Origin: Heterodontus francisci
Lineage: Eukaryota
Assembly: GCF_036365525.1 (NCBI RefSeq)
Contig: NC_090404.1
Coordinates: 4,030,001-4,094,000 of the forward strand
DNA: 64,000 bases
Direction: 5' to 3'
The notes under the pieces are model-generated. The model was not told where the DNA came from, did no database searches, and saw nothing but the letters and a program-made list of their open reading frames with translations. A program made the translations under genes and the position numbers. Below, piece by piece: positions 7,420 to 60,820 of this stretch; the stretch's first letter is position 1, and the number at the start of each line of letters is the position of its first letter.

Positions 7420-10400
7420 TATCATAGAGTTATGCAGGACACAAACAGGCCCTTCGGCCCATTGTGTCTTTCCCGTTCATCAAGCACCTAACTATTCTAA
7501 TCCCATTTTCCAGCCATTGGATCAGAGCCTTGTATAATATGGCGTTTCAGGTGCTCATCTATGTACTTCTTGTTGTGAGGGTTCCTGCCTCTACCACCTC
7601 TTCAAGCAGTGCATTCTCGATTCCAACCACTCTCTGGGTGAAAATGTTTTCCTCAAATCCACTCTAAACCTCCTGCACCTTACCTTAAAACTATGCCCCC
7701 TGGTTACTGACCGCTCGGCTAAGGGAAAATGTTTCTTCCTATCTAACCTATCAATGCCCCTCATAATTTTGTCTCCCTCAATCATATCTCCCCTCACCCT
7801 TCTCTGCTCCAAGGAAAACAACCGTAGCCTTTTCAGTCTCTCTGCATAGCTGAAATGCTCCAGCCCAAGCAGCATCCTGGTGAATCTTCTCAGCACCCTC
7901 TCCAGTGCAATCACATCCTTCCTATAGTGTGGTGCCCAGAACTGTGCACAGTACTCTAGCTGTGGCCTAACTGGCATTTTATACAGCTGCATCATAACCT
8001 CCCTGCTCTGAAATTCTATGCCTTGGCTCATGAAGGCAAGTATCCCATATGCTTTCCTAACCACCTTATCTACCTGTGCTGCTGCCTTAAGTGATCTATG
8101 GACAAGTATACCAAGGTCCCTCTGACCCTCTGTATTTCCTAGGGTCCTACCATCCGTTGTATATTCCCCTGCCTTGTTAGTCCTCTCAAAATGCATCACA
8201 TCACACTTCTCAGGATTAAATTCCATTTGCCAAAGCTCCACCCATCTTACCAGCCCATCAACATCGGCCTGTAATCTGAGGCTTTCCTCCTCACTATTTA
8301 TGACACCACCAATTTTCGTGTCATCTGCGAACCTACTTACCATACCTCCTATGTTCACGTCTAAATCAATAATGTACACTAAAAACAGCAAGGGTCGCAG
8401 CAACAATCCCTGTGGTACACTATTGGTCACAGGCTTCCACTCACAAAAACAACCCTCGACCATGACCCTCTGCCTCCTGCCACTGAGCCCATTTTGGATC
8501 CAATTTGCCAATTTGCTTCTTGACCAATCTCCCATGTGGGACCTTATCAAAAGCCTTACTGAAGTCCATAAATACTACATCAACTGCTTTATTCTCATCT
8601 ACAAAATGTCATCACCGCCTCAAAAAATTCACTCAAGCTAGTCAGACACGATCTCCCACTGACAAAGCAATGCTGACTATCCCTGATTAATCCCTGCCTC
8701 TCCAATTGGAGATTAATCCTGTCCCTCAGAGATTTTTCCAATAGTTTCCCAACCAATGATATTAGACTCACTGGCCTGTAATTACCTGGTTTATCCCTGC
8801 TACCCTTCTTAAATAATGGTACCACATTCGCGGTCCTCCAATTCTCTGGTACCTCTCCTGTGGCCAGAGAGGATTTGAAACTTTGAGTCAGAGCCCCTGC
8901 TACCTCCTCCCTTGCCTCACATAACAGCCTGTGTTACATCTCATCTGGGCGTGGGGATTTGTACAGTTTTAAGCCCGATATAACTGCTAATACTTCTTCC
9001 CTTTCAATGCTAATATGTTCAAGTATATCACAATCCCCCTCCCTGATCTCTACACCGACATCGTCCTTCTCCATAGTGAACACAGATGAAAAGTAATCAT
9101 TTAAAACCTCACCTATGTTCTCCGGCTCCACACACAGAATGCCACTTTGGTCCCTAATGGGTCCTACTCTTTCCCTGGTTATCCTCTTGCCTTCAATATA
9201 CTTGCAAAACGCCTTAGGATTTTCCTTTATCTTGCCTGCCAGTGTTTTTTCATGTCCCCTCTTCGCTCTCCTAATTACTAATTTAAGTACCCCCCGACAA
9301 TTTCGATACTCCTCTAGTGCCTCCACTGTTTTCAGCACACTGAATGTGCCATAAGTTTCCGTTTTTTTACTGATCCAATCCTCTATATCCCTTAACATCC
9401 AGGGTTCCCTGAACTTGTTGGTTCTACCCTTCACCTTACTGGTTACATGTTGGCTCTGAACTCTCACTATTTCCTCTTTGAATGACTCCCACTGATCTGA
9501 TGTCGACTTTCCTACAAGTAGCTGCTCTCAGTCCACTTTGGCCAGATCATGTTTTATCATCCGAAAATCGGTCTTCTCCCAATTCAGAACCTTTATTTTC
9601 CGTCCATCTTTGTCCTTTTCCATAACTACCTTAAATCTTGCAGAGTTATGGACACTATCCCCGAAATGTTCCCCCACTGACACTTCTCCCACTTGTCCGG
9701 CTTCATTCCCTAGGATTAGGTCCAGTACTGTCCCTTCTCTTGTTTGGACTATCTACGTACTGGCTCAAAAAGCTCTCCTGTATGCATTTTAAGAATTCTG
9801 CCCCCTTTAAGCTATTTGCACTGAGTCGATCCCAGTTGATATTGGGGAAGTTGAAATTCCCTGCTATTATTACCCTATTATTTTTACATCTCTCTGAGAT
9901 TTGCCTACATATCTGCTCCTCTATCTCTCCCTGACTATTTGGAGGCCTGTAGTACACTCCCAGCCAAGTGATTGCCCCATTTGTGTTTTTAAGTTCTACC
10001 CATTTGAGGAACCTTCTAAGATATCATCCCTCCTCATTGCAATAATTGACTCCTTGATCAACAGTGCAAGGCCAACTCCTCTTTTACACCCTCCCCTATC
10101 AGGCCTGAAGATTCTATTCCCTGGGATACTGAGCTGCCAGCACTGCCCTTCCCTCAACAATGACCCTGCGACAGTAATAATACCATATTCCCATGTGTTA
10201 ATCAACACCCTCAATTCATCTGCCTTACTTGTAAGACTCCTTGCATTAAAATAGATGCAATCCAGCCTTGAATTTTGCACTTGTGCCTTAACAGGTCTAT
10301 ATTTGCTCTGCCTTCCAGATTGACTCAGTTTATGTCGATGACTGTGCATCACCCTCCACGATACCTACACTCAGTATCCCATCCCCCTGCCAAGTTAGTT

Positions 10401-10780
10401 TAAACCACACACCCCCACACCCAGCAACAGCACCAGCAAACCTCCCAGCAAGGATGTTGGCCCGTTCTGGTTCAGGTGCAACCCGTGCAACTTGTTCAGG
10501 TCCCAAATTTGCTGGAAACAGACCCAGTGATCCAGGAAACTAAAGCCTTCCCTCCTGCACCACCTCCTCAGCCACGCATTCATCTGCTCTATCCTACTAA
10601 TCCTATACTCACCAGCACGTGGCACCGAGAGTAATCCAGGGATTACAACCTTTGAGATCCTGCTTGTTAATCTTCTTCCTAGCTCACTAAATTCTTGTTA
10701 CAGGACCTCATCCCTCTTTTCACCTATGTCGTTGGTGCCAAAGTGTACTACGACCTCTGACTGTTCCCCTCCCCTTTCAG
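7420..10780 (-). mobile_element. Decayed long CR1 (ORF1 C-terminus, ORF2, 3' end)
   Basis: Minus ORFs 10395-10625 (esterase end, LHGLHLNQ...GLN*), 9996-10352 (CIYFNARSL, APE), 7591-8550 (RT). Confidence 0.92.
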
Positions 10781-32933: not shown

Positions 32934-33110
32934 GAGTAAACCCGAGCCACTACACATGTAGTGTCTCCCACCCATCCTCCTCCTCTAACCTAATAATAAG
33001 ACCCTTTTTACCCTCCTCCTCTAACCAAAAAGGACTGAGCAGGTAAGCTATTTACTGTTTTTGTTAATATCTATAGTTGTACTTAACTAAGGGGTAATTG
33101 AATAAAAGAA

Positions 33111-34031
33111 ATGGCAGCCAGTGTAGTGTATTGCTCCTCCTGCAGAATGTTCGAGGTGAGGGGAACCTCCGGTGACCCTGCCGACTTCACCTGCTGGAAG
33201 TGCATCCGTCTCCAGCTCCTATCAGACCGTGTTAGGGAATTGGAGCTGGAGCTGGATGAACTGAGGATCATTCGGGAAGCTGAGGGGTTGATAGATAGAA
33301 GCTACACGGAGGTCGTTACTCCACAAATCAAAGGCAGCTGGGTAACAGTTAGAGGTGGGAAGAGGTCAGTGCAGGGATCTCCTGTGGTCGTTCCCCTCAA
33401 CAACAAGTATACAGTTTTAGATACTGTTGGGGGGGACGGCCTATCGGGGGCAGGCTGCAGTGACCGGGCCTCTGGCACGGGGTCCTGCACTGTGGCTCAG
33501 AAGGGAAGGAGGGAGAATGGGAGAGCACTAGTCATCGGGGACTCGATGGTGAGGAGTACGGACAGGCGGTTCTGTGGGCGCAGGCGAGACGCACGGATGG
33601 TTTGTTGCCTCCCTGGTGCCAGGGTCCGTGATGTTTGTGATCGCGTCTTCAGGATCCTTAAAGGGGAGGGGGAGCAGCCAGAGGTCGTGGTGCACATTGG
33701 CACCAACGACGTAGGAAGGAAGGGTGGCACAGATGTTAGAAGTGAGTTTAGGGAGTTAGGCTGGAAGCTGAAAGCTCGGACGGACAGAGTTGTTATCTCT
33801 GGTTTGTTGCCGGCGCCACGTGATAGTGAGGCTAGGAATAGGGAGAGAGCACAGCTGAACACGTGGCTGCAGGAATGGTGTAGGAGGGAGGGCTTCCAGT
33901 TCTTGGATAATTGGACTGCATTCTGGGGAAGATGGGACCTGTTCAAACAGGACGGGCTGCATCTGAACCAGAGGGGCACCAATATCCTGGGAGGGAGGTT
34001 TGCTAGTACTGTTCGGGAGGGTTTAAACTAG
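33111..34031 (+). CDS. CR1 ORF1p (CxxC..CxxC zinc finger, leucine zipper, SGNH-type esterase), 306 aa
   Basis: CSSC/CWKC, LQLLSDRVRELELELDEL, VIGDS, HIGTND, DGLHLN motifs. Confidence 0.95.
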   Translation: MAASVVYCSSCRMFEVRGTSGDPADFTCWKCIRLQLLSDRVRELELELDELRIIREAEGLIDRSYTEVVTPQIKGSWVTVRGGKRSVQGSPVVVPLNNKYTVLDTVGGDGLSGAGCSDRASGTGSCTVAQKGRRENGRALVIGDSMVRSTDRRFCGRRRDARMVCCLPGARVRDVCDRVFRILKGEGEQPEVVVHIGTNDVGRKGGTDVRSEFRELGWKLKARTDRVVISGLLPAPRDSEARNRERAQLNTWLQEWCRREGFQFLDNWTAFWGRWDLFKQDGLHLNQRGTNILGGRFASTVREGLN

Positions 34032-36919
34032 TTTGGGAGGGGGATGGGAACCGGACTTGTAATCCAGGGACCAGTGGGTCCACTCAGAAAGACAAAGAGT
34101 GTAGTGAGGTATTGGGGAAGGTAGCACTGTCACAGAGGACAGATGGGCACGGAGAAGGATTAAAGTGCGTATACTTCAACGCAAGAAGCATCAGGAATAA
34201 GGTGAGTGAATTGAAGGCGTGGATGGGCACTTGGGACTACGATGTTGTGGCCATCACTGAAACGTGGATAGGTGAGGGGGAGGAATGGTTTTTGGAGGTA
34301 CCTGGTTATAGATGTTTTCATAAGATTAGGAATGGTGGTAAAAGAGGTGGGGGGGTGGCATTGTTAGTTAGAAATAGTGTAACAACTGCTGAAAGAATTT
34401 TCGAGGAGGATCTGCCGACTGAGGCACTGTGGGTTGAGGTCAGGAACAGGAAAGGAGCAGTCACCTTGATGGGAGTTTTCTATAGGCCCCCCAATAGCAG
34501 CAGGGAGGTGGAAGAGCAGATTGGGAAACAGATTTTGGAAAGGAGCAGAAGTCACAGGGTAGTAATTATGGGGGATTTCAACTTCCCAAATATTGATTGG
34601 CAACTCTTTAGATCGAATAGTTTGGATGGGGTAGTGTTTGTGCAGTATGTCCAGGAAGCTTTTCTGACTCAGTATGTAGACTGCCCGACCAGAGGGGAGG
34701 CAATATTGGATTTGGTACTAGGTAATGAACCAGGGCAAGTGATAGAGCTGTTGGTGGGCGAGCACTTTGGAGATAGTGATCACAATTCTGTAGCATTCAC
34801 TGTGGTAATGGAGAGGGATAGGTATGTGCAACAGGGCAAGGTTTACAATTGGGGGAAGGGTAGATATGATGCTGTCAGGCAGGAACTGAGGAGCATAAGT
34901 TGGGAGCATATGCTGGCAGGGAAGGGCACGGTCGAAATGTGGAACTTTTTCAAGGAGCAGATAGTAGGGGCCATTGATAAGCATGTCCCTGTCAGACAGG
35001 GAAGGGATGGTCATGTGAGGGAACCGTGGTTGACAAGAGAGGTTGAGAGTCTTGTTAGGAAGAAGGATGCGTATATAAAGTTGAGGAAAAAGGGCACAGG
35101 CATAGCTCTGGAGGGATACAAGATGGCCAGGAAGGATCTGAAGAAAGGGATTAGGAGAGCTAAGAGAGGGCATGAAAAATGCTTGGCGGGTAGGATAAAA
35201 GAAAACCCCAAGGCCTTTTACGCGTATGTCAGAAATATGAGGATGACCAGGGGGACCATAGGTCCGGTCAAGGACAATAGCGGTAGACTGTGTGTTGAGC
35301 CGGAAGAGATAAGTGAGGTTTTGAATGAGTACTTCTCTTCGGTATTTACGAATGAGAAGGGGTGTATTACTGAAGAGGACGGTGTGAAACAGACTGGTAA
35401 GCTCGAGGAAGTGCTCGTTAGGAGGGAAGATGTGTTGCGGTTTTTGAATAACTTGAAGATAGACAAGTCTCCCGGGCCTGACGGGGTATATCCAAGGATG
35501 TTATGGGAAGCAAGGGATGAAATTGCAGAGCCGCTGGCAATGATCTTTTCATCTTCTCTGCTGACGGGGGTGGTACCAGGTGATTGGAGGGTGGCAAATG
35601 TTGTGCCCCTGTTCAAGAAAGGGAATAGGAACAACCCTGGGAATTACAGGCCAGTTAGTCTTACTTCGGTGGTAGGCAAGTTGATGGAAAAGGTGCTGAG
35701 GGATAGGATTTCTGAGCATCTGGAAAGACACTGCTTGATTCGGGACAGTCAGCACGGTTTTGTGAGGGGTAGGTCTTGCCTCACAAGCCTGATTGAATTC
35801 TTTGAGCAGGTGACCAAGCAAGTGGATGAGGGTAAACCAGTGGATGTGGTGTACATGGATTTTAGTAAGGCATTTGATAAGGTCCCCCATGGTAGACTTA
35901 TGGAGAAAGTCAGGAGGCATGGGATAGTGGGGAATGTGGCCAGTTGGATTAAGAATTGGCTAACTGATAGAAGGCAGAGAGTGGTCTTAGATGGTAAATA
36001 CTCAGCCTGGAGCCCAGTTACCAGTGGCGTGCCGCAGGGATCAGTTCTGGGTCCTCTCCTGTTTGTGATTTTTATTAACGACTTGGATGAGGAAGTCGAA
36101 GGGTGGGTCAGTAAATTTGCAGATGATACAAAGGTTGGTGGAGTTGTGGATACCGAGGAGGGCTATTGTCGTCTGCAGGGGGACTTGGATAGGTTGCAGT
36201 GCTGGGCTGAAAAGTGGCAGATGGAGTTTAACCCTGAAAAGTGTGAGGTCGTCCATTTTGGAAGGACAAACATGAATGCAAAATACTGGGTTAACGGTAG
36301 GGTTCTTGGGCATGTGGAGGAGCAGAGAGACCTTGGGGTCTATGTGCATAGATCATTGAAAGTTGCAACTCAAGTGGATAGGGCTGTGAAGAAGGCATAT
36401 GGGGTGTTAGCGTTCATTAGCAGAGGGATTGAATTTAAGAGCCGTGAGGTGATGATGCAGCTGTACAGGACCTTGGTAAGGCCTCATTTGGAGTACTGTG
36501 TGCAGTTCTGGTCGCCTCATTTTAGGAAGGATGTGGAAGCCTTGGAGAGGGTGCAGAGGAGATTTACCAGGATGTTGCCTGGAATGGAGAATAAGTCTTA
36601 CGAGGAAAGGCTGAACATTCTAGGCCTCTTCTCATTAGAAAGGAGAAGGATGAGGGGTGACATGATAGAGGTTTATAAGATGATCAGGGGAATAGATAGG
36701 GTAGACAGTCAGAAACTTTTTCCCCGGGTGGAGCAAAGCGTTACAAGGGGTCATAAATTTAAGGTGAAGGGTGGGAGATATAAGGGGGATGTCAGGGGAA
36801 GGTTCTTTACCCAGAGAGTGGTCGAGGCATGGAATGCCTTGCCCGGGGAAGTTGTTGAGTCAGAAACTTTAGGGACTTTCAAAAGGCTTTTGGATAGGTA
36901 TATGGATAAAGGAGAATGA
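34028..36919 (+). CDS. CR1 ORF2p (APE endonuclease + reverse transcriptase); frame open from 34007, no AUG before 34223
   Basis: CVYFNARS, ITETW, GDFN, SDH (APE); [32 protein letters not shown] (RT); no stops. Confidence 0.95.
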   Translation, partial: LVWEGDGNRTCNPGTSGSTQKDKECSEVLGKVALSQRTDGHGEGLKCVYFNARSIRNKVSELKAWMGTWDYDVVAITETWIGEGEEWFLEVPGYRCFHKIRNGGKRGGGVALLVRNSVTTAERIFEEDLPTEALWVEVRNRKGAVTLMGVFYRPPNSSREVEEQIGKQILERSRSHRVVIMGDFNFPNIDWQLFRSNSLDGVVFVQYVQEAFLTQYVDCPTRGEAILDLVLGNEPGQVIELLVGEHFGDSDHNSVAFTVVMERDRYVQQGKVYNWGKGRYDAVRQELRSISWEHMLAGKGTVEMWNFFKEQIVGAIDKHVPVRQGRDGHVREPWLTREVESLVRKKDAYIKLRKKGTGIALEGYKMARKDLKKGIRRAKRGHEKCLAGRIKENPKAFYAYVRNMRMTRGTIGPVKDNSGRLCVEPEEISEVLNEYFSSVFTNEKGCITEEDGVKQTGKLEEVLVRREDVLRFLNNLKIDKSPGPDGVYPRMLWEARDEIAEPLAMIFSSSLLTGVVPGDWRVANVVPLFKKGNRNNPGNYRPVSLTSVVGKLMEKVLRDRISEHLERHCLIRDSQHGFVRGRSCLTSLIEFFEQVTKQVDEGKPVDVVYMDFSKAFDKVPHGRLMEKVRRHGIVGNVASWIKNWLTDRRQRVVLDGKYSAWSPVTSGVPQGSVLGPLLFVIFINDLDEEVEGWVSKFADDTKVGGVVDTEEGYCRLQGDLDRLQCWAEKWQMEFNPEKCEVVHFGRTNMNAKYWVNGRVLGHVEEQRDLGVYVHRSLKVATQVDRAVKKAYGVLAFISRGIEFKSREVMMQLYRTLVRPHLEYCVQFWSPHFRKDVEALERVQRRFTRMLPGMENKSYEERLNILGLFSLERRRMRGDMIEVYKMIRGIDRVDSQKLFPRVEQSVTRGHKFKVKGGRYKGDVRGRFFTQRVVEAWNALPGEVVESETLGTFKRLLDRYMDKGE

Positions 36920-37000
36920 TGGGGTATAGATTAAATTGTCCTTGACAGAGGACAAAGGATCGGCACAACATTCTGGGCCGAAGGGCCTGTTCTGTGCTGT

Positions 37001-37296
37001 ATGTTCTATGTTCTATGTTCTATGTTCTATGTTCTATGTTCTATGTTCTATGTTCTATGTTCTATGTTCTATGTTCTATGTTCTATGTTCTATGTTCTAT
37101 GTTCTATGTTCTATGTTCTATGTTCTATGTTCTATGTTCTATGTTCTATGTTCTATGTTCTATGTTCTATGTTCTATGTTCTATGTTCTATGTTCTATGT
37201 TCTATGTTCTATGTTCTATGTTCTATGTTCTATGTTCTATGTTCTATGTTCTATGTTCTATGTTCTATGTTCTATGTTCTATGTTCTATGTTCTAT
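37001..37296 (+). repeat. (ATGTTCT)n CR1 3' tail, about 42 units
   Basis: Perfect 7-mer microsatellite following the CR1 3' UTR. Confidence 0.98.
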
Positions 37297-37479
37297 TAAT
37301 GTTAATATACAGTTATCCTTATTCCTGCAATGTTTCACTTTTCAAATAATGATCTAATTTCCTTTTAAAAGTAACGATTGAATCTACCTCCACCAACATT
37401 TGCAGGCAGTGTATTATGGAGTTTAACATCTCGCTGAATAAAGGCAAAATTCTCTTCCTTTTTCCTCTGTTTCTTTTTG

Positions 37480-38812
37480 CAAGTATCTATGTGTTTTTGC
37501 AGATTGGCAACACCGGACAGCCCGCTTCTACCTCCTTCCGAAAATTCACAAACAAGACTGTCCTGGCAGACCCATCGTTTCAGCCTCTTCCTGCCCCACT
37601 GAACTTATTTCTTTCTATCTTGACTATCTTTTCTCAACTGGTCCAGTCTCTTCCCACCTGCATCCGTGACTCTTCTGAAGCCCAACATCGTTTATGGCAA
37701 TTTCCAGTTCCCTGGCCCAAACCGCCTCCTCTTCACGATGGACGTCCAATGTTTCTGCACCTCCATCCCCCACCAGGAAGGTCTGAGGGCTCACCCCTTC
37801 TTCCTTGAACAGAGGTCTTCGTTATGCCTGCCTTTTTGTGGGATATGTCGAACATTCCTTGTTCCAGTCCAACTAAGGCCCCCTGACCCAACTCGTTTTC
37901 CGGTATATTGATGATTGAATGGGTGCCGTTTCCTGCACCCGCCCGAACTGGAAATCTTTATCAACTTTGCTTCTAATTTCCACCCTTCTCTCTCCTTTAC
38001 ATGGTCCATCTCCGACACATCCCTTCCCTTCCTTGACGTCATTGTCTCCATCTCTCGGGATTGGCTGTCTAATATAAGCCCACAGACTCCCATAAATACC
38101 TCGACCACACTTCTTCACACCCTACCTCCTGTAAGGACTTTATTCCATTATCCCAGTTTCTCGGTCTCCATCGCATCAGTTCTGATGATGCAACCTTCGG
38201 CAACAGCGCTTCTGACCCGCGACAGGGTTCCCCTTGTCCTCACTTTCCACCTCACCAGCCTCCATATCCAAAGGATCATCCTCCACCATTTCTGCCACGT
38301 CCAGCGTGATGCCAATACCAAACGCAGCTTCCCCTCCCCTCCCATGTCAGCATTCCGAAGGGATCATTCCCTCCACGACACCGTAGTTCACTCCTCCATT
38401 ACCCCCAAAGGCCGTCCCCTTCCTATGGCTCCTTCCCATGCAATCACTGGAGGTGGAATACCTGCCCCTTTACCTCCTCTCTCCTCACTATCCAAGGCCC
38501 GAAACACTCCGTTCAGGAGAAGCAGCGATTTACTTGTACTTCCTACAATGCAGTATACTGTATTCGCTGCTCGCAATGCAGTCACCTCTGCACGAGGGAG
38601 ACCAAAGGCAGATTGGGTGACCGCTTTCGGGAACACCTCTGCTCAGTCTAAAAACATGCCCCGAGCTTCTTGTCGCTTGTCATTTCATTACCCGCACCCG
38701 CTCCCACCCATACAAAGTCCCGCCGCCTCCCTTCCTCCACCCACCCCCCCCCCCCCACCCCCCAACTCTGCTCTCTTGCCGAATTCTCTGTCCTGGACTT
38801 GCAGCAGTGTTA
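37480..38812 (+). mobile_element. Penelope-like element fragment (RT + GIY-YIG), decayed
   Basis: LLFTMDVQ..TSIPHQEGL, RYIDD, LPFLDV, RVPLVLTFH, VYCIRCSQC. Confidence 0.85.
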
Positions 38813-40620
38813 CGTGTGCTGTGGATAGAGTGGAACCAGTGGATGGAGCTTACTTAGGTTTCCAGAAGGCATTTGATAAGGTGCCACAGCAAAGGTTATT
38901 GCAGAAAATAAAACCTCATGGTGTAGGGGGTAACATATTGACATGGACAGAAGATTGGTTAGCTAACAGCAACAGAGAGTATGCATAAATAGGTCAGTTT
39001 CTGAATGGCAAGATGTAACGAGTGGTGTGTCACAGGGATCTGTGCTGGGGCCTCAACTTTTTACAATTTATATAAATGACTTAGATGAAGGGACCGAAGG
39101 TGTGGTTGATAAACTTGCTGATGACACAAAAATGGCTGGAAAGTAACTTGCGAAGAGGACATAAGAAGGCTACAAAGGGATGAAGATAGGTTAAGTGAGT
39201 GGGCAAAGATCTGGAAAAGTGAGTATAATGTGGGAAAGTGTGAGATTGTCCTCTTTGGCAGGAAGAATAAAAAAGAAGCAGGTTATCTAAATGGTGAGAG
39301 ATTTCCGAGCTGTGAGATGCAGAGGGATCTGGGTGCCCTAGTGCATGAATCGCAAAAGGTTAGTATGCAGATACAGCACATAATTAGGAAAGCTAATAGA
39401 ATGTTATCATTTAATTGAATACAAAAGTAAGCAGGTTATGCTTCAGCTATAAAGGACGTTGGCGTGACCACATCTGGATTACTGTGTACAGTACTGGTTC
39501 CTCATTTAAGGAAGGATGTAAATACGTTGGAGGCAGTAGAGAGATGGTTTCCGAGACAAATACCTGGAATGGATGGGCTTTCTTACCAGGAAAGGTCCTG
39601 GGGAAAATTGATATACAGAGAGATTTGGGTGTTCAGGTCCATTGTTCCCTGAAGGTGGCAACGCAGGTCAATAGAGTGGTCAAGAAGGCATACGGCATGC
39701 TTTCCTTCATCGGACGGGGTATTGAGTACAAGAGTTGGCAAGTCATGTTACAGTTGGATAAGAGTTTGGTTCGGCCACATTTGGAATACTGCGTGCAGTT
39801 CTGGTCGCCACATTACCAAAAGGATGTGGATGCTTTGGAGAGGGTGCAGAGGAGGTTCACCAGGATGTTGCCTGGTATGGAGGGCGCTAGCTATGAAGAG
39901 AGGTTGAGTAGATTGGGATTATTTTCATTAGAAAGACGGAGGTTGAGGGGGGACCTGATTGAGGTGGACAAAATCATGAGAGGTATAGACAGGGTGGATA
40001 GCAAGAAGCTTTTTCCCAGAGTGGGGGATTCAATTACTAGGGGTCGCGAGTTCAAAGTGAGAGGGGAAAAGTTTAAGGGGGATATGCGTGGAAAGTTCTT
40101 TACGCAGAGGGTGGTGGGTGCCTGGAATGGGTTGCCAGCGGAGGTGGTAGACGCGGGCACAATAGCATCATTTAAGATGTATCTAGACAGATACATGAAT
40201 GGGCAGGAAGCAAAGAGATACAGACCCTTAGAAAATATTCGACATGTTTAGATAGAGGATCTGGATCGGCGCAGGCTTGGAGGGCCGAAGGGCCTGTTCC
40301 CATGCTGTAATTTTCTTTGTTCTTTGTTCTTTGAAAGATAGGATAAGGTCGGCTTGCATCCGCTGGAATTTAGAGGAGTAAGAGGCGACTTGATTGAAAC
40401 ATATAATATCTTGAGGGGGCTTGACAGGGTGGATGTGGAAAGGATGCTTCCCCTAGTGGGAGAATCTCGAACTGTCACTGTTTAAAATTAAGGTGTCGCC
40501 CATTTAAGACCGAGATGAGGAGAATATTTTTCTCTCAGAGGGTCGGCAGTCTTTGGATTCCTCTTCCTCAAAAGGCAGTGGAAGCAGAGTCTTTGAATAT
40601 TATTAAGGCAGAGTTAGATA
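38813..40620 (+). mobile_element. Decayed CR1 containing a younger 5'-truncated CR1 (39595-40332) with GAAAG TSD
   Basis: GAAAG at 39590-39594 and 40333-40337; insert ends in (TTCTTTG)n; host resumes in register. Confidence 0.85.
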
Positions 40621-43984: not shown

Positions 43985-45100
43985 TTTACTTATTCTTTAA
44001 TCGGAGGTGGGCATCTCTGGTGAGGTCAGTATTTAATACCTGTCTCTACTTGCCTTTGATAAGGTGGTGGTGAGCTGCCTTCTTGAACTACCGCAGTCCT
44101 GGGGGTGCAGGTTCACCCACAGTGCTATTAGGAAGGCAGCTCCAGGATTTTGACCCAGCAACAGTGAAGGAACGGCGCTTTCGTTTCAAGTCAGGATGGT
44201 GTGTGGTTTGGAGGGGAACTTGCAGCTGCTGGCATTCCTAAGTTTCTACCGTCCTTGTCCTTCTAGGTGTTAGAGATCACGGGAATGGAAGGTACTGTCC
44301 AAGGCGTCTTGGTGCGTTGCTGCAGTGCATCTTGTAGATGGTACACACTGCTGCTACTGTGTATGGGTGGTGGAGTGAGTGAATGCTGAAGGTTGTGGAT
44401 GTGGTGCCGATCAAGCGGGCTGCATTCTCCTGGATGGTGTCGAGCTTCCTGTCTGTTGTTGGAGCTGCACGCATACAGGCAAATGGAGGGTATTCCATCA
44501 CACTCCAGACTTATGCATGTAGGTGGAGGACAGGCTTTGTGGAGACAGTAAGTTAGTCACTCGCTGCAGAATTCCTCGCCTCTGACCTGCTCTAGTAGCC
44601 ATAGTACTTTTATGGCTGGTCCAATTCAGTTTCTGGTCAATGATAACCTGCAGAATTAGGTCCGTGGGGGGTTCAGCAATGGCAATGGTATTGTACATCA
44701 AGGGAAGATGGTTCGATTCTCTTTTGTTTGAGATGGTCATTGCCTGGCTCCTGCGTTGTGTGAAGTTTACCTGCCACTTATCAGCCCAAGCCTGGATGTT
44801 GTCCAGATCTTGCTGCATCTGGATACGGACTGCCGCGAATGGTGCTGAACATTGTGCAATCCTCAGCGAATATACCAATTCTGACCTTATTATTGAAGGA
44901 AGGTCATCGACGAAGCAGCTGAGGATGGTCTTTCCTAGGACACTACCCTGAGGAACTCATGCAGTGATGTCCTGGGACTGAGATGATTGACCTCCAACAA
45001 CCACAACCATCTTCATTTGTCCAGGTATGACTCCAACCAGCGGAAATGTTCCCCCTTGATTCTCATGGGCACCCGTTTTGCTCAGGCTCCTTGATGCTCT
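43985..45100 (-). mobile_element. CR1/L2-clade non-LTR RT 3' fragment
   Basis: Minus ORF MQQDLDNIQAWADKWQVNF...IDQKLNWTSH; same family as 19800-20350. Confidence 0.8.
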
Positions 45101-48100
45101 ACTCCTGCTACCATTTTGGTTTACTTCCTCTGCACTCGCACCAATGTCTTGAGATTCTTTTTCAATAGTGGGGACAGCTGTTAAGCTAACAGGCATATAA
45201 TTTCCTGCTGTCTGTCACACCCCTTTTTGCGAGTTTTCAATCCTCTCGGAGGTTTCCAGAATCTAGGGTATTTTGGGAGATTGCAACCAATACATCCACT
45301 ATCTCTACAGCGACTTCTTTTAAAGGGAGATGGAGTGGAGCAATGTGAGGGGATCCCTCGGCTGGTGTTCAGTGAGTTCAGGAAGATGGTATCAGAGGGA
45401 ATGGAGCATGGAGAGAAGATTCCTGGGGTGATCTTCGGTGAGTTCAAGGAGATGGTGTAAGAGGGAATAGAGCAGAACAAAGAGGAAGTTCAACTGAGGC
45501 GGGGGGGGGGGGGGGGTGGAGGCAGGGGGGTGCGGAGGGCAAATAACGAGGTATAGTAGAAATGATGGAGGCAGTGATTCAACATGTGCATAACAGAAAA
45601 GTGGACACTGTGTGTGTATCTGACAGAACAGGTGGACAGTGTGGTTTGTGTATATAACAGTAAATTTGAAGTTAGAGTCTATGTGTCAGATAGACCTCAG
45701 AATCCGGGGCTCATTCCTACCGTTTGTCCTCCCTCTTGTGTCTACCAGACTCTGGGAGTCATCCCAGCAATTGAATTGATTCAAATTCATTGAAACCCTA
45801 ATTAACTATTTAATTAATAAATAGAGGAGCAACTAATCCGGAGGGAGGAGATTACTGCATTTAATATTTATAGTAGAAAGCTAGCGCTAGGGACCATATA
45901 GTTAATTGTAACTTTATTTAGTAAGGATTTAATAAGTATTTCTTTTAAATTAATGTATTAATTAGTGCTAGAAATGTCTGTTAGAGGGGTAAAGTGCTTC
46001 ACCTGTGAGATGTGGGAGGTCCATGACACTTCCAGCATTGCGGACAACGTCATCTGCAAGAAGTGTACCCAATTGCAGCTCGTCACAGACCGCATGTATC
46101 GGTTGGAGCAGCAATTGGATGCGCTTAGGAGCATGCAGGTGGTGGAAAGCATCATAGACAGGAGTTTTAGAGATGTGGGTACACCCAAGGTGCAGGCAGA
46201 TGGATGGGTGACCGCTAGAAGGGGCAGGCAGTTAGTGCAGGAATCCCCTGTGGCTGTCCACCTCTCTAACAAGTATACCGTTTTGGATACTGTTGGGAGG
46301 GATGGCCTATCAGGGGAAAACAACAGCAGCAGCCACAGCAGTGGCACCACGGCTGGTTCTGTTGTTCAACAGGGAGAGACAAAGCGCAGAAGAGCATTAG
46401 TTCTTGGGTACTCTATAGTCAGGGGCACAGATAGGCGCTTCTGAGGTCGTGAAAGAGACTCTAGGATCGGATACTGCCTTCCTGGTGCCAGGTTCAATGA
46501 TGTCTCTGAATGGGCAGGGGGCATTCTGAAGGGGAAGGTGAACAGCCAGAGTTTGTGGTACACACTGGTACCAACGACATAGGCAGGAAGAGTGACAGGG
46601 TTCTGCAGGAGGAATAACTTAGGTTGTAAGTTAAAAAACAGGACCTCTCGGGTTGTAATTTCGGGATTACTCTCTGTGCCACGTGCCAGTGAGGCGAGAA
46701 ATAAGAAGATAGTGCAGCTGAACACGTGGCTAAACAGCTGGTGCTGGAGGGAGGGTATCAGATATCTGGATCATTGGGATCTCTTCCGGGGCAGGTGGGA
46801 CCTGTACAAGAAGGACGGGTTGCATCTAAACTGGAGGGGCACAAATGTCCTGGCCGCAACTTTTGCTCACGTCACTCGGGAGGGTTTAAACTCGTGTGGC
46901 AGGGGGGAGGGAACAAGAGCAGTTGGTCAGCAGGTGAAGCAACTGAGGGGGAACTAGTAAATAAGGCCAGTAAGACTGAGAGGAAGAGCAGGCAGGGAGA
47001 TGTTGCTGAGCACAGCGGGACTGGTGGTCTGAAGTGCATTTGTTTCAGTGCGAGAAGTATAACAGGTAAGGCAGATGAAATTAGAGCTTGGATTAGTACT
47101 TGATGTTGTTGCTATTACAGAGATTTGGTTGAGGGAAGGGCAGGATTGCCAACTAAATGTTCCAGGATTTAGAAGCTTCAGGCGGGATAGAGGGGGGTGC
47201 AAAAGGGGTGGGGGAGTTACATTACTGGTTAAGGAGAATATCACAGCTGTACTGCGGGAGGATACCTCGGAAATCTCATGCAGCGAGGCATTATGCAGAG
47301 CTCAGGAATAGGACGGGTGCAGTCACAATGTTGGGGGTTTACTGCAGGCCTCCCAACAGCCAGCGGGAGAGAGAGAGAAGCATATATGTAGATAGATTTT
47401 GGAAAGATGTAAAAGCAACAGGTTTGTTGTGGTCGGTAATTTAAACTTCCCCTATATTGACTGGGACTCAATTAGTGTTAGGGGCTTGGATGGGGCAGAA
47501 TTTGGAAGGAGCATCCAGGAGGGCTTCTTGAAACAATGTGTAGATTGTCCAACTAGGGAAGGGGCCGTACTATACCTGGTATTGGGGAATGAGCCCAGCC
47601 AGGTTGTCGAAGTTTCTGTAAGGGAGCATTTCCGGAACGGTAGCCATAATTCCGTAAGTTTTAAGGTTCTTGTGGATAAGGATAAGAGTAGTCCTCCGGT
47701 GAAGGTGCTAAATTGGAGGAAGGCTAATTATAACAATATTAGGCAGGAACTGAAGAATTTAGATTGGGGGCGGCTGTTTGAGGGTCAATCAACATCTGAC
47801 ATGTGGGAGTCTTTCAAACGTCAGTTGATTAGAATCCAGGACCGGCATGTTCCTGTGAGGATGAAAGATAACTTTGGCAAGTTTTGGGTACCTTGGATAA
47901 CGAGGGATATTGTGAGCCTAGTGAAAAAGTAAAAGGAAGCATTCGTAAGGGCGAGAAGGCTGGGAACATACGAAGCCCTTGAGGAATATAACGAAAGTAG
48001 AAAGCAACTTAAGCAAGGAGTCAGGAGGGTTAAAAGCGGTCATGAAAAGTCTTTGACAAACAGGATTAAGGAGAATCCCACGGCTTTATATACGTATATA

Positions 48101-50240
48101 AAGAACAAGAGGGTAGCAAGGGTAAGGGTTGGCCCACTCAAGGACAGAGGAGGAAATCTATGCGTGGAGCCTGAGGAAGTGTGCGAGGTACTAAATGAGT
48201 ACTTTGTATCAGTATTCACCCAAGAGAAGGACTTGGTGGATGATGAGGCCGGGGAAGGGAGTGTAGATAGTCTGGGTCATGTCGATATCAAAAAGGAGGA
48301 GCTGTTGGGTGTCTTGAAAAACATTAAGATCGAGATGTCCCCAGGGCGTGATGGGATCTACTACCCCAGAATACTGAGGGAGGCAAGGGAGGAAATTGCT
48401 GGAGCCTTGACTGAAGTCTTTGTATCCTCATTGGCGACAGGTGAGATCCCAGAGGAGAGGAAAATAGCCAATGTTGTTCCTTTGTTTAAGAAGGGTGGTA
48501 AGGATAATCCAGGAAATTAGAGGCCGGTGAGCCTTCCGTCAGTGGTAGGGAAATTATAAGAGAGGATTCTTCGGGACAGAATTTATTCCCATTTGGAAAC
48601 AAATGGACTTATTAGCAAGAGGCAGCTTGGTTTTGTGAAAGAGAGGTCGTGTCTCACTAACTTGATCGTGTTGTTTGAGGAAGTGACGAAGATGATTGAT
48701 GAAGGAAGGGCAGTGGAAGTTGTCTACATGGACTTAAGTAAAGCCTTTGACAAGGTCCTTCATGGCAGATTGGTACAAAAGGTGAAGTTACACGGGATCA
48801 GAGGTGAGCTGGCAAGATGGATGCAGAACTGGCTCGGTCAAAGAAGTCAGAGGGTAGCAGTGGAAGGGTGCTTTTCTGAATGGAGGACTGTGACTAATGG
48901 TGTTTTGCAGGGATCAGCGCTGGGACCTTTGCTGTTTGCAGTATATGTAAATGATTTGGAGGAAAATGTAGCAGGTCTGATTAGTAAGTTTGCGGATGAC
49001 ACAAAGGTTGGTGGAGTTGAGAATAGTGATGAGGATTGTCAGAGGATGCAGCAGGATATAGATCGGTTGGAGACATAGGCAGAGAAATGGCAGTTGGAGT
49101 TTAATCCGGACAAATGTGAGGTAATGCATTTTGGAAGGTCTAATACAAGTGGGAAGTATACAGTAATGGCAGAACCCTTAGGAGTATTGACAGGCAGAGA
49201 GATCTGGGCGTACAGGTCCAAAGATCACTGAAAGTGGCAAAGCAGGTGGATAAGGTAGTCAAGAAGGCATATGGCATGCTTGCCTTCATCGGTTGGGGCA
49301 TAGAGTATAAAAATTGGCAAGTCATGCTGCAGCTGTACAGAACCTTAGTTAGGCCACACTTGGAATATTGCATACAATTCTGGTCGCCATACCACCAGAA
49401 GCATATGGAGGCTTTGGAGAGGGTACAGAAGAGGTTTACCAGGATGTGGCCTGGTCAGGAGGGTATTAGCTGCCAGGAGAGGTTGGATAAACTCGAATTG
49501 CTTTCACTGGAACGACAAGGTGGAGGGGTGACATGATAGAGGTTTACAAAGTTATGTGTTGCATGGGCAGAGTGCTTAGTCGGAAGGTTTTTCCCAGGGT
49601 GGAAGAGTCAGTTACTAGACGACATAGGTTTAAGGTGCGAGGGGCAAAGTTTAAAGGGGATGTTTCCCGGCGGAGCAGCAGGAGAAGGTAGCGACTCTTC
49701 GGTGGGTGAGTGAAGGCATCAGGAGCTGTGTTTTAAAAGTAAGTACTTACTGTTTTACTTACTGTTTTCCTTGTCTTTGAGTTTCTTTTGGCGCCGGAGG
49801 AACCGGAAGCTGGTCGGCAGCGAGGACTCCTGGGTAGGTATTTTCCTTAAAGGTGCGGAGCTCCGTGGACTCGGCCTCATTTCCCGGCGGAGCAGCAGGA
49901 GAAGGTAGCGACTCTTCGGTGGGTGAGTGAAGGCATCAGGAGCTGTGTTTTAAAAGTAAGTACTTACTGTTTTACTTACTGTTTTCCTTGTCTTTGAGTT
50001 TCTTTTGGCGCTGGTCGGCAGCGAGGACTCCTGGGTAGGTATTTTCCTCAAAGGTGCGGAGCTGAGTAAACCCGAGCCACTACACATGTAGTGTCTCCCA
50101 CCCATCCTCCTCCTCTAACCTAATAATAAGACCCTTTTTACCCTCCTCCTCTAACCAAAAAGGACTGAACAGGTAAGCTATTTACTGTTTTTGTTAATAT
50201 CTATAGTTGTACTTAACTAAGGGGTAATTGAATAAAAGAA

Positions 50241-51161
50241 ATGGCAGCCAGTGTAGTGTATTGCTCCTCCTGCAGAATGTTCGAGGTGAGGGAAACCTCC
50301 GGTGGCCCTGCCGACTTCACCTGCTGGAAGTGCATCCGTCTCCAGCTCCTATCAGACCGTGTTAGGGAATTGGAGCTGGAGCTGGATGAACTGAGGATCA
50401 TTCGGGAAGCTGAGGGGTTGATAGATAGAAGCTACACGGAGGTCGTTACTCCACAAATCAAAGGCAGCTGGGTAACAGTTAGAGGTGGGAAGAGGTCAGT
50501 GCAGGGATCTCCTGTGGTCGTTCCCCTCAACAACAAGTATACAGTTTTAGATACTGTTGGGGGGGACGGCCTATCGGGGGCAGGCTGCAGTGACCGGGCC
50601 TCTGGCACGGGGTCCTGCACTGTGGCTCAGAAGGGAAGGAGGGAGAATGGGAGAGCACTAGTCATCGGGGACTCGATGGTGAGGAGTACGGACAGGCGGT
50701 TCTGTGGGCGCAGGCGAGACGCACGGATGGTTTGTTGCCTCCCTGGTGCCAGGGTCCGTGATGTTTGTGATCGCGTCTTCATGATCCTTAAAGGGGAGGG
50801 GGAGCAGCCAGAGGTCGTGGTGCACATTGGCACCAACGACGTAGGAAGGAAGGGTGGCACAGATGTTAGAAGTGAGTTTAGGGAGTTAGGCTGGAAGCTG
50901 AAAGCTCGGACGGACAGAGTTGTTATCTCTGGTTTGTTGCCGGCGCCACGTGATAGTGAGGCTAGGAATAGGGAGAGAGCACAGCTGAACACGTGGCTGC
51001 AGGAATGGTGTAGGAGGGAGGGCTTCCAGTTCTTGGATAATTGGACTGCATTCTGGGGAAGATGGGACCTGTTCAAACAGGACGGGCTGCATCTGAACCA
51101 GAGGGGCACCAATATCCTGGGAGGGAGGTTTGCTAGTACTGTTCGGGAGGGTTTAAACTAG
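50241..51161 (+). CDS. CR1 ORF1p (copy B), 306 aa
   Basis: Three amino-acid differences from copy A ORF1. Confidence 0.93.
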   Translation: MAASVVYCSSCRMFEVRETSGGPADFTCWKCIRLQLLSDRVRELELELDELRIIREAEGLIDRSYTEVVTPQIKGSWVTVRGGKRSVQGSPVVVPLNNKYTVLDTVGGDGLSGAGCSDRASGTGSCTVAQKGRRENGRALVIGDSMVRSTDRRFCGRRRDARMVCCLPGARVRDVCDRVFMILKGEGEQPEVVVHIGTNDVGRKGGTDVRSEFRELGWKLKARTDRVVISGLLPAPRDSEARNRERAQLNTWLQEWCRREGFQFLDNWTAFWGRWDLFKQDGLHLNQRGTNILGGRFASTVREGLN

Positions 51162-54054
51162 TTTGGGAGGGGGATGGGAACCGGACTTGTAATCCAGGGA
51201 CCAGTGGGTCCACTCAGAAAGACAAAGAGTGTAGTGAGGTATTGGGGAAGGTAGCACTGTCACAGAGGACAGATGGGCACGGAGAAGGGTTAAAGTGCGT
51301 ATACTTCAACGCAAGAAGCATCAGGAATAAGGTGAGTGAATTGAAGGCGTGGATGGGCACTTGGGACTACGATGTTGTGGCCATCACTGAAACGTGGATA
51401 GGTGAGGGGGAGGAATGGTTTTTGGAGGTACCTGGTTATAGATGTTTTCATAAGATTAGGAATGGTGGTAAAAGAGGTGGGGGGGGGTGGCATTGTTAGT
51501 TAGAAATAGTGTAACAACTGCTGAAAGAATTTTCGAGGAGGATCTGCCGACTGAGGCACTGTGGGTTGAGGTCAGGAACAGGAAAGGAGCAGTCACCTTG
51601 ATGGGAGTTTTCTATAGGCCCCCCAATAGCAGCAGGGAGGTGGAAGAGCAGATTGGGAAACAGATTTTGGAAAGGAGCAGAAGTCACAGGGTAGTAATTA
51701 TGGGGGATTTCAACTTCCCAAATATTGATTGGCAACTCTTTAGATCGAATAGTTTGGATGGGGTAGTGTTTGTGCAGTATGTCCAGGAAGCTTTTCTGAC
51801 TCAGTATGTAGACTGCCCGACCAGAGGGGAGGCAATATTGGATTTGGTACTAGGTAATGAACCAGGGCAAGTGATAGAGCTGTTGGTGGGCGAGCACTTT
51901 GGAGATAGTGATCACAATTCTGTAGCATTCACTGTGGTAATGGAGAGGGATAGGTATGTGCAACAGGGCAAGGTTTACAATTGGGGGAAGGGTAGATATG
52001 ATGCTGTCAGGCAGGAACTGAGGAGCATAAGTTGGGAGCATATGCTGGCAGGGAAGGGCACGGTCGAAATGTGGAACTTTTTCAAGGAGCAGATAGTAGG
52101 GGCCATTGATAAGCATGTCCCTGTCAGACAGGGAAGGGATGGTCATGTGAGGGAACCGTGGTTGACAAGAGAGGTTGAGAGTCTTGTTAGGAAGAAGAAG
52201 GATGCGTATATAAAGTTGAGGAAAAAGGGCACAGGCATAGCTCTGGAGGGATACAAGATGGCCAGGAAGGATCTGAAGAAAGGGATTAGGAGAGCTAAGA
52301 GAGGGCATGAAAAATGCTTGGCGGGTAGGATAAAAGAAAACCCCAAGGCCTTTTACGCGTATGTCAGAAATATGAGGATGACTAGGGGGACCGTAGGTCC
52401 GGTCAAGGACAATAGCGGGAGACTGTGTGTTGAGCCGGAAGAGATAAGTGAGGTTTTGAATGAGTACTTCTCTTCGGTATTTACGAATGAGAAGGGGTGT
52501 ATTACTGAAGAGGACGGTGTGAAACAGACTGGTAAGCTCGAGGAAGTGCTCGTTAGGAGGGAAGATGTGTTGCGGTTTTTGAATAACTTGAAGATAGACA
52601 AGTCTCCCGGGCCTGACGGGGTATATCCAAGGATGTTATGGGAAGCAAGGGATGAAATTGCAGAGCCGCTGGCAATGATCTTTTCATCTTCTCTGCTGAC
52701 GGGGGTGGTACCAGGTGATTGGAGGGTGGCAAATGTTGTGCCCCTGTTCAAGAAAGGGAATAGGAACAACCCTGGGAATTACAGGCCAGTTAGTCTTACT
52801 TCGGTGGTAGGCAAGTTGATGGAAAAGGTGCTGAGGGATAGGATTTCTGAGCATCTGGAAAGACACTGCTTGATTCGGGACAGTCAGCACGGTTTTGTGA
52901 GGGGTAGGTCTTGCCTCACAAGCCTGATTGAATTCTTTGAGCAGGTGACCAAGCAAGTGGATGAGGGTAAACCAGTGGATGTGGTGTACATGGATTTTAG
53001 TAAGGCATTTGATAAGGTCCCCCATGGTAGACTTATGGAGAAAGTCAGGAGGCATGGGATAGTGGGGAATGTGGCCAGTTGGATTAAGAATTGGCTAACT
53101 GATAGAAGGCAGAGAGTGGTCTTAGATGGTAAATACTCAGCCTGGAGCCCAGTTACCAGTGGCGTGCCGCAGGGATCAGTTCTAGGTCCTCTCCTGTTTG
53201 TGATTTTTATTAACGACTTGGATGAGGAAGTCGAAGGGTGGGTCAGTAAATTTGCAGATGATACAAAGGTTGGTGGAGTTGTGGATACCGAGGAGGGCTA
53301 TTGTCGTCTGCAAAGGGACTTGGATAGGTTGCAGTGCTGGGCTGAAAAGTGGCAGATGGAGTTTAACCCTGAAAAGTGTGAGGTCGTCCATTTTGGAAGG
53401 ACAAACATGAATGCAAAATACTGGGTTAACGGTAGGGTTCTTGGGCATGTGGAGGAGCAGAGAGACCTTGGGGTCTATGTGCATAGATCATTGAAAGTTG
53501 CAACTCAAGTGGATAGGGCTGTGAAGAAGGCATATGGGGTGTTAGCGTTCATTAGCAGAGGGATTGAATTTAAGAGCCGTGAGGTGATGATGCAGCTGTA
53601 CAGGACCTTGGTAAGGCCTCATTTGGAGTACTGTGTGCAGTTCTGGTCGCCTCATTTTAGGAAGGATGTGGAAGCCTTGGAGAGGGTGCAGAGGAGATTT
53701 ACCAGGATGTTGCCTGGAATGGAGAATAAGTCTTACGAGGAAAGGCTGAACATTCTAGGCCTCTTCTCATTAGAAAGGAGAAGGATGAGGGGTGACATGA
53801 TAGAGGTTTATAAGATGATCAGGGGAATAGATAGGGTAGACAGTCAGAAACTTTTTCCCCGGGTGGAGCAAAGCGTTACAAGGGGTCATAAATTTAAGGT
53901 GAAGGGTGGGAGATATAAGGGGGATGTCAGGGGAAGGTTCTTTACCCAGAGAGTGGTCGAGGCATGGAATGCCTTGCCCGGGGAAGTTGTTGAGTCAGAA
54001 ACTTTAGGGACTTTCAAAAGGCTTTTGGATAGGTATATGGATAAAGGAGAATGA
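51158..54054 (+). pseudogene. CR1 ORF2 (copy B) with a +2 G frameshift in a homopolymer at about 51479-51487
   Basis: G9 here versus G7 in copy A; otherwise open; could be a sequencing error. Confidence 0.85.
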
Positions 54055-55535
54055 TGGGGTATAGATTAAATTGTCCTTGACAGAGGACAAAGGATCGGCA
54101 CAACATTGTGGGCCGAAGGGCCTGTTCTGTGCTGTATGTTCTATGTTCTATGTTCTATGTTCTATGTTCTATGATGTGCGAGGCAAACTCTTTACACAGA
54201 GGGTGGTGAGTGCCTGGAACCTGCTGCCGGGGGAGGTGGTGGAAGCAGGTACGATAGTGACGTTGAAGAGGCATCTTGACAAATGCACTAATAGGATGGG
54301 AATAGAGGGATACGGTCCCCGGATGTGCAGAAGGTTTTAGTTTAGACAAGCATTGTTCATTTTTCTTTGAATTGTGCCTCCTTCTTTGTCTAATAGGCTT
54401 CAGGATCAGGAAGTCATTCCCAGGGGTTGTCCTCTCTGATGTATTCGATAGTCCCTTGAATGTGGGCTCCCTGTTGTGGAAAATGGACCCCAGGCTCTTG
54501 GGATAATTCCCAGCATTTATTCTTAATGGTCTATCGTTCCAGATATTCATTAGTCTTGAGGAATCATTCCCAGGGTTTATTGTCTCTCGTGTCTGTGTTA
54601 TATTTCTAACCTGGTCAGTGCCTGCCCTGGGAGCGTTTGCTGGTGCAGTGTAGAGGGAGCTTTACTGTGTATCTAACCCGGGCTGTGCCTGCCCTGAGAG
54701 TGTGTTTTGCGGCAGTGTGAAGGGAGCTGTCCTCTGCATTATCCCGTAAACTACCTATCCTGGGAGTGTTTGATGGACAGTATTCTTTCATATACTACAC
54801 TGCTCTTTAATGCAACCTGGCACCTGACTGTGACAGACCATGGGAGGTGCTCCTCTTCGCTGTGCGGCCATTCCGACCCTGGGCATTGGCATTTTGAGGC
54901 AGAAGGAAAGGTGGCTATATTCTGATGAGCCACTGGATGGCACAGCAGCACCATCACCGAAAGACTTTTGGTTCAAACACAAACCAGACAGGACTGGTGG
55001 AAAACAGCTGTCAGGAAAAGGGAAAATGTGTAATCGGTAAAATGGAGCGTGTGAATGGGCCTTGGAGCAGGGAATTGAGCAAAGTCAAGTTAGTCCATTT
55101 GTTACTCAAGATTTATTCACAATTTCAAAAAAAACATTTTACAGAAACATTTTTAAAGGGTCCAAAGTGAATTTAGCACCTGTGAGTCACATTGAGGACA
55201 AAACACATGCGATCTGAGCTGTAGACTACTTCTAAAATTGTTACAGATCAGAGAGAAAACAGGGGCTCAACATAAAGAGAAGGAAACAGTTGCAAATAAG
55301 GGATAGTTATTTATTTACAGATGAAATTCAAACTATTGTGAAACTCGAAGGTGCATAGACATTATCGGTAAGATTATCTGACACAATTCAAAGAGAAAAA
55401 CGGAAACAATGTTTATGATCTTCTCAGCTACAGATTCTGAACCATAAACTGACGGCAATTTACTTTTACAGTTTGTTTGATAATGCAGAGATGTTAAAAA
55501 ATAAGGAAAATCCAGGGCGGCCGAAATTCGATCGA

Positions 55536-60284: not shown

Positions 60285-60820
60285 GCATAAGAATAAGAGT
60301 GGGCCATTCAGCCCCTCGAGCACGTTCCGCCATTCAATTACACGATGGCTGAATTGTATCTTAATTCTGTTTACCCATATATAACCCTTAATACCCTTAC
60401 CTGTCAGAAATCTATCACTCGCAACATTAAAGTTTTCAATGGATGTCAAGCTTCTAAAGTGAGTTGGGGGTGAGAATTCCAGATTACCGCTATCTACTGT
60501 GTGAATACTCCCTTCATGATATCATTCCTGAATGACCATGGTCTAATCTGAAGGTTATGCCCCCTGGTTCTGAAGTTCCTCACCAGAGGAAATATTTTTC
60601 TCCATTGACTCCATCAATTCCAGTAAACATCTTAACCACCTCAATTAGATCACACTTTAATCTTCTATACTCAAAGCAATACCAGTTTGGCCTGTGAAAC
60701 CTGTCCTCATAACTTAACCCGATCAGCCCCGTTATCATTATGGTCAATTCTTGTTCCACCACTCCCAAGGCCAATACATTCTTCCTGTGCTCTGCAGTCC
60801 AGAATTGAACACAGTTTTCT
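60285..60820 (-). mobile_element. Decayed CR1 3' fragment in the CH2-CH3 intron
   Basis: LENCVQFW...SYEDRF...DLIEV. Confidence 0.75.

Follow-up and report, generated by a model that had tools for sequence, protein, structure and literature searches.

A conserved slippery heptamer at the ORF1/ORF2 junction of esterase-type CR1 retrotransposons points to programmed -1 ribosomal frameshifting

Reviews describe the translation of ORF2 of long interspersed elements (LINEs) from their bicistronic RNA as unsettled; the mechanisms that they list are reinitiation, internal ribosome entry sites and 2A, and frameshifting is not among them (PMC3894237, PMC3708506). Termination-reinitiation at UAAUG has been shown for ORF2 of SART1, and AUG-independent reinitiation has been proposed for human L1 (PMC3708506, PMC3894237). 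Heptamers of the form X_XXY_YYZ are known from the gag/pol overlap of retroviruses and long terminal repeat (LTR) retrotransposons (PMC5009743). In this study, we analysed a 64,000-nt stretch of Heterodontus francisci DNA (contig NC_090404.1 of assembly GCF_036365525.1, positions 4,030,001 to 4,094,000, hereafter the window, to which all coordinates refer), in which a LINE of the CR1 type (copy A, 33000-37300) carries the heptamer U_UUA_AAC at the very end of ORF1. An earlier note on this DNA had suggested that ORF2 may be made by frameshifting at this site. Our results make programmed -1 ribosomal frameshifting (PRF) at U_UUA_AAC the probable route to ORF2, with a probability of roughly two in three, and the product would be a Gag-Pol-like ORF1-ORF2 fusion of 1269 aa.

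Copy A is a full-length, intact CR1-type LINE, with all its features on the plus strand. ORF1 (33111-34031, 306 aa) has a Cys-rich, zinc-finger-like N-terminus followed by a GDSL/SGNH esterase domain (PF13472 in Pfam, E 5.9e-14), and ends with the codons GAG GGT TTA AAC TAG, giving the C-terminus E-G-L-N-stop. The heptamer T_TTA_AAC (34022-34028) is in X_XXY_YYZ phase with ORF1, the zero-frame codons being GGT TTA AAC, and directly adjoins the stop codon TAG (34029-34031), an adjacency that is kept elsewhere as TAG, TGA, or TAA. ORF2 is open from 34007 to 36919 in the -1 frame relative to ORF1, and the closest 5' stop in that frame, a TAG at 34004-34006, confines the overlap of the two ORFs to 22 nt (34007-34028) that contain the heptamer. 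Ten nt past the heptamer lies GGGGG (34039-34043), the core of a G-rich tract (34035-34048) and a candidate linear 3' stimulator. U_UUA_AAC, a stop, 7 nt, and GGGGG would thus make up the junction cassette. Behind a linker, ORF2 encodes an APE endonuclease (~34172-34783; PF03372, aa 56-259, E 6e-20) and a reverse transcriptase (RT) (~35621-36313; PF00078, aa 539-769, E 6e-36), and the element ends in an (ATGTTCT)n microsatellite tail (36988-37296). Copy A therefore has all three features of a CR1 with an esterase ORF1, namely an ORF2 with APE and RT, an SGNH/GDSL ORF1, and a 3' end of tandem repeats rather than poly(A). The closest named relatives of both its ORFs are from sharks and rays. Every coordinate that the earlier note had given for this junction holds, including the end of ORF1, the phase of the heptamer, the upstream TAG, the G-tract beginning 6 nt past the heptamer, and the fusion length of 306 + 963 = 1269 aa.

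The junction is deeply conserved at the DNA level. Metagenome contigs scanned with an ORF1 alignment gave 80 loci, most of them from one animal-derived sample and the remainder from unrelated samples, with ORF1s 27-41% identical to that of the window; the ORF1 3' end could be recognised in 65 of the 80. Viral contigs scanned in the same way gave no relatives. Turtle and squamate CR1s are nearest to the ORF1s of the main sample, and the ORF2 N-termini look avian-type. Exact TTTAAAC is present in 57 of the 65 loci, invariably as NNT TTA AAC in the same phase, and a stop codon adjoins it in 56 of these 57 (TAG in 43, TGA in 12, and TAA in 1), with CGA in its place at L057. The other eight loci (8/65), mostly decayed copies, are off by one nt, and among them L006 has GTTAAAC, the shift site of equine arteritis virus. 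At one junction, that of a decayed sauropsid-type copy (L003:3807-3835), there is a 15-nt tandem duplication, with TTTAAACTGAAGGAT present twice.

A conservation profile was made from 16 lineage representatives in a gap-free alignment anchored on the heptamer, which is exact in 15 of them. All heptamer columns reach 2.0 bits except position 0, where L006 has G, compared with ~0-1 bit in the flanking columns and an average of ~0.3 bit at the upstream third-codon positions of ORF1. The heptamer is thus conserved at synonymous sites, a point that the earlier note had proposed to check. Of the six Leu codons only TTA is used, the Asn codon is fixed as AAC and the wobble base before them as T, and judging from this alignment, these fixed choices reflect constraint at the nucleotide level. 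The three columns after the heptamer read T-R-R, which is the stop, and columns +17 to +21 read GGGGG (1.66-2.0 bits); none of the 16 lineages has an indel that separates this run from the heptamer by more or fewer positions. Two Gs of this run are synonymous sites in the -1 frame (third base of xAG and third base of Gly GGG), and the residue encoded just before the run varies among E, Q, K, S, W, and L. Since the synonymous Gs are fixed while the neighbouring residue varies, the G-run is constrained as RNA and not as protein. Furthermore, many lineages have a -1-frame stop only one or two codons 5' of the heptamer, as in TAG GGC TTT AAA C, so that dual coding is no explanation for the motif and the change of frame is pinned there.

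The window itself contains three other copies of the cassette. Copy B (50130-54173) matches copy A at 99.6% identity and has an identical junction (cassette at 51152-51173, plus strand), and its ORF2 frame is broken near 51484. Copy C (45974-49664), whose ORF1 has 52% aa identity to that of copy A, retains GGT TTA AAC in phase and the G-run (46885-46906, plus strand), and its stop is changed to TCG. The decayed copy D has GGT TTA AAC TAA in the ORF1 frame and also retains the G-run (10383-10404, minus strand), and its ORF2 is broken downstream. These four copies represent three diverged CR1 subfamilies. The pattern TTTAAAC-TRR-N7-GGGGG, allowing at most one mismatch, occurs four times in the window, every time at the end of a CR1 ORF1, and is thus beyond chance as compared to the 0.01 occurrences expected from dinucleotide shuffles. 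The window is crowded with CR1 fragments of several subfamilies (1-23300, 38800-40620, 44700-54300, and 60450-60830), and its two full-length copies, 33000-37300 and 50130-54173, lie only 13 kb apart at 99.6% identity. A run of 152 N, a gap or masked sequence, occupies 3127-3278.

At the protein level, a search gave 174 homologues of ORF1 from sharks, rays, skates, coelacanth, a teleost, frogs, turtles, a snake, and lizards, and among the best 120 of the 174, whose C-termini were examined, about 77 full-length proteins end exactly in x-L-N-stop. The residue before L-N in these proteins, x, can be encoded by an NNU codon (G, A, Y, T, S, C, or D); only two proteins have E there. The coelacanth, teleost, frog, turtle, and squamate homologues enter this comparison as protein ends. 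In an alignment of 25 ORF1 sequences with a mean identity of 41%, L305 and N306 are invariant, and the cysteines C8, C11, C28, and C31 of the N-terminus are near-invariant. Two homologues are filed under bacterial names. One, P0001 (Pseudomonas aeruginosa SGNH/GDSL hydrolase), shares 91% identity with the ORF1 of copy A, and the other, P0123 (Carnobacterium maltaromaticum hypothetical protein), corresponds to a CR1 ORF2; both entries seem to derive from DNA of cartilaginous fish that contaminated assemblies of bacteria. In addition, CR1 ORF1 or ORF2 segments are found inside gene models named after host genes such as ribosomal protein S24, TMEM204, hydroxyacid oxidase 2, and MINPP1b (P0030, P0088, P0090, P0126, P0129, and P0037); these are probably predictions that are chimeric with transposable elements or frame-corrected. 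The protein search for natural in-frame ORF1-ORF2 fusions gave only two of them, P0037 and P0129, which provide no evidence for a fusion because they are chimeric Gnomon models that stay in the -1 frame all the way across the junction (...GFKL...).

The reading frames downstream of the heptamer were compared in 12 copies of six lineages. Between the heptamer and the catalytic Asn of the first APE motif, a distance of 39-97 codons, the -1 frame has no stops and the other frames have one to eight, so the -1 frame is the sole frame open into APE, and its translation reaches the endonuclease in every lineage examined. In copy A, the first AUG of the ORF2 frame (34223-34225, 201 nt past the heptamer) follows the Asn codon of the motif CVYFNARS (34178-34180) by 15 codons, in agreement with the earlier note, which had placed this AUG after the first endonuclease motif. 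The first Met also lies 3' of the catalytic Asn in three other lineages, and the position of the first -1-frame AUG varies among copies, from +66 to +267 in most. No start codon conserved across lineages, cognate or near-cognate, was found in the linkers of these copies. The junction therefore has what canonical -1 PRF calls for in an in-phase heptamer, a -1 ORF that is open without a conserved start, and conservation at synonymous sites, and no conserved 3' structure was found 5-9 nt past the heptamer.

From these features we infer that ribosomes slip at the heptamer, in the following way. The majority of ribosomes translating ORF1 would end at UAG and free the esterase ORF1p. A minority would slip back by 1 nt, with tRNA-Leu moving from UUA to UUU and tRNA-Asn from AAC to AAA, and would go on in the -1 frame to give the 1269-aa fusion (306 + 963) with the junction ...EGLN/LVWEGDG..., so that the zinc-finger/esterase module, the endonuclease, and the reverse transcriptase would sit in a single polypeptide. 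A variant of frameshifting with the identical fusion as its product is a slip of a single tRNA paused at the stop, where tRNA-Asn in the P site would move from AAC to AAA with the stop in the A site. The conserved stop directly after the heptamer, which classical tandem slippage does not need, speaks for this variant. However, a single-tRNA slip requires A_AAC and a stop alone, yet the upstream U_UU is equally invariant, and we regard this variant as very improbable.

Several observations weigh against frameshifting. One sauropsid-type group has a conserved Met (M48) before the APE Asn, the shark-lineage ORF2 proteins P0121, P0122, and P0127 begin at a Met in the linker, and near-cognate codons are present in linkers; because a linker Met precedes the APE Asn there, independent initiation is possible in some lineages. 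UUUAAAC shifts only weakly in the absence of a strong stimulator. The minimum free energy (MFE) folds of the 16 lineages share no stem-loop at 5-9 nt past the heptamer, nor was a conserved pseudoknot found there, although such folding does not cover pseudoknots. In copy A, the 120 nt that follow the heptamer fold no more stably than shuffled sequences (z = +0.43), and no Rfam family matched at the junction. The loci compared are mostly decayed copies out of one host sample, and an ORF1-ORF2 fusion is undescribed for any LINE in the literature searched.

The first of these observations, together with the missing classical 3' structure, also speaks for the alternative that ORF2 is translated on its own, either through termination-dependent reinitiation or by non-AUG initiation in the linker, with TTTAAAC and the G-run kept for another role, for example as a site that promotes reinitiation. 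Also in its favour, the ORF1 stop of every lineage lies next to the point where the ORF2 frame opens, and the published LINE precedents are reinitiation and not frameshifting (PMC3708506, PMC3894237, PMC5009743). However, the start codon is conserved in neither position nor identity across lineages, and an AUG that overlaps the ORF1 stop or lies within a few nt of it, as in restarts of the SART1/calicivirus type, is absent from the junction, in contrast to the UAAUG of SART1. Furthermore, reinitiation leaves the constant UUA, the constant AAC, the preceding U, and the exact X_XXY_YYZ phase unexplained. Separate translation of ORF2 is thus unlikely in our view, and we continue with frameshifting as the preferred reading.

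Since no conserved stem was found, the G-run at its fixed distance of 10 nt may act as a linear stimulator, a role that we infer from its conservation and spacing. It would lie at the mRNA entrance of the ribosome and would perhaps act via a bound protein, the latter suggested by analogy alone. Of the earlier proposal of frameshifting, the heptamer, its phase, the stop, and the G-run stood up well, being deeply conserved next to a sole open -1 frame; the slip itself is read from these features, and the 3' hairpin that was to stimulate it did not stand. This hairpin, GGACC-AGTG-GGTCC (34068-34081), does exist in the MFE fold of copy A. It is lineage-specific, being missing from copies C and D, and was rejected as a stimulator because it lies 40 nt from the heptamer and is unconserved; it is probably irrelevant. 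The second, overlapping heptamer G_GGU_UUA pointed out in the earlier note is likewise present in copy A and was rejected as unconserved, since copy D and the sauropsid-type lineages lack it. Fold stability was significant in one lineage only, the L007 type, with the arms GGGAUGGG/CCCAUCCC. In most lineages, no C-run that could pair with the G-run turned up in the 400 nt on the 3' side or the 300 nt on the 5' side. A G-quadruplex was rejected as a general mechanism, as none of the 16 lineages could form one with three tiers and only 11 could form one with two; a single G6 run is found in three of the 16. In loci of the L029/L017 type (~-17 to +59), an upstream GGGCTCAT is complementary over 8 nt to a downstream ATGAGCCC, bracketing the heptamer. 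This pairing is limited to one sauropsid-type subfamily, and a local hairpin is an alternative fold for its 3' arm; it was therefore treated as a chance match.

Sequencing-run data across the junction consisted of assembled contigs, which are uninformative on expression level, strand, and rare isoforms. Positions 33662-35042 are spanned by a 1381-nt contig from the same organism, which has two substitutions, positions 33233-34258 by one of 1035 nt from a related organism, and positions 33795-34041 by one that stems from a true RNA library. The contigs crossing the junction show no insertion, deletion, or joint at 34022-34043, and that they are unbroken speaks against frequent splicing or editing there. 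In one run (X1), the summed contig depth, a poor measure, is up ~5-fold in the 33996-34123 bin as compared to adjacent bins, which fits an alignment of many CR1 subfamilies at the conserved cassette alone. The contigs also bear on the explanation that the cassette is a non-decoding signal in RNA or DNA, be it a weak poly(A)-like UUUAAA with a G-rich element that yields transcripts of ORF1 alone, an internal promoter of the TATA type, or a site for binding or packaging by ORF1p or ORF2p. G-rich elements 3' of poly(A) hexamers are known, and the G-run is under RNA-level constraint, including at -1-frame synonymous sites, with no pairing partner nearby. Such a signal, however, needs neither a fixed phase with ORF1, nor an adjoining stop, nor the T and C at the two ends of the heptamer; selection for a poly(A) signal would be expected to yield AAUAAA or AUUAAA; and the contigs pass unbroken through the cassette. 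It would also leave ORF2 without a start codon in several lineages. Taken together, we consider a non-decoding role improbable.

If ORF2 is expressed by frameshifting, CR1 would be the first non-LTR retrotransposon with a well-supported frameshift in the style of Gag-Pol. A full-text literature search that took in reviews on recoding and on LINE protein biogenesis, with early CR1 descriptions outside its reach, yielded no account of ORF2 expression by -1 frameshifting in CR1 or any other LINE, and a 2026 survey of CR1-group elements mentions neither frameshifts nor overlaps. Frameshifting would set the ORF2:ORF1 stoichiometry, and the predicted fusion would alter the picture of ribonucleoprotein assembly and cis-preference of CR1. 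The motif of ~25 nt can be tested in reporters and would be useful for annotating intact CR1 copies and ORF2 N-termini, and the G-run at a fixed distance may represent a new type of frameshift stimulator. As a tentative and, on balance, doubtful extension, one could speculate that the esterase-type CR1s, the dominant LINEs of non-mammalian vertebrates, have made their endonuclease and RT solely as a frameshift fusion for hundreds of millions of years, tuned through a protein-bound linear GGGGG kept at 10 nt from the heptamer and not through RNA structure. In that case, the protein bound to the G-run could be a host G-tract protein or the zinc-finger ORF1p of the element itself, and binding by ORF1p would autoregulate the ORF2:ORF1 ratio.

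Among known frameshifting systems, the ORF1a/1b junction of coronaviruses and arteriviruses is similar to that of CR1 in having U_UUA_AAC in the same phase (G_UUA_AAC in equine arteritis virus, the arterivirus form that L006 has) and a polymerase in the downstream ORF. Whereas these viruses have an H-type pseudoknot ~5-7 nt downstream, CR1 has an invariant G5 at 10 nt and no conserved structure was found there; moreover, the zero-frame stop of CR1 is immediately adjacent to the heptamer, and CR1 is a nuclear LINE and not an RNA virus. A zero-frame stop that adjoins the slippery site, as in CR1, is known from -1 PRF of luteoviruses and dianthoviruses (GGGUUUU-UAG in barley yellow dwarf virus). 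These viruses use a bulged stem-loop and long-distance pairing; for CR1, the search for pairing spanned 400 nt downstream and 300 nt upstream. A parallel for the G-run is protein-dependent PRF, as in porcine reproductive and respiratory syndrome virus (PRRSV), with nsp1beta-PCBP and a C-rich motif ~11 nt downstream, and in cardioviruses with 2A. CR1 likewise has an unstructured sequence element ~10-14 nt downstream, although its motif is G-rich where that of PRRSV is C-rich, and the parallel is drawn by analogy.

In terms of gene expression strategy, the scheme proposed here for CR1 resembles retroviral and LTR-type Gag-Pol, where one mRNA would give an abundant accessory protein and a rare fusion bearing the RT. 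Unlike Gag-Pol, CR1 is a non-LTR element, its ORF1p is an esterase/zinc-finger protein instead of Gag, and it has no protease to cleave the fusion. Like SART1 and human L1, CR1 is a LINE with a bicistronic mRNA in which expression of ORF2 is coupled to the end of ORF1. It has no overlapping AUG at this point, however, and its ORF2 lies in the -1 frame behind a canonical and conserved slippery heptamer.

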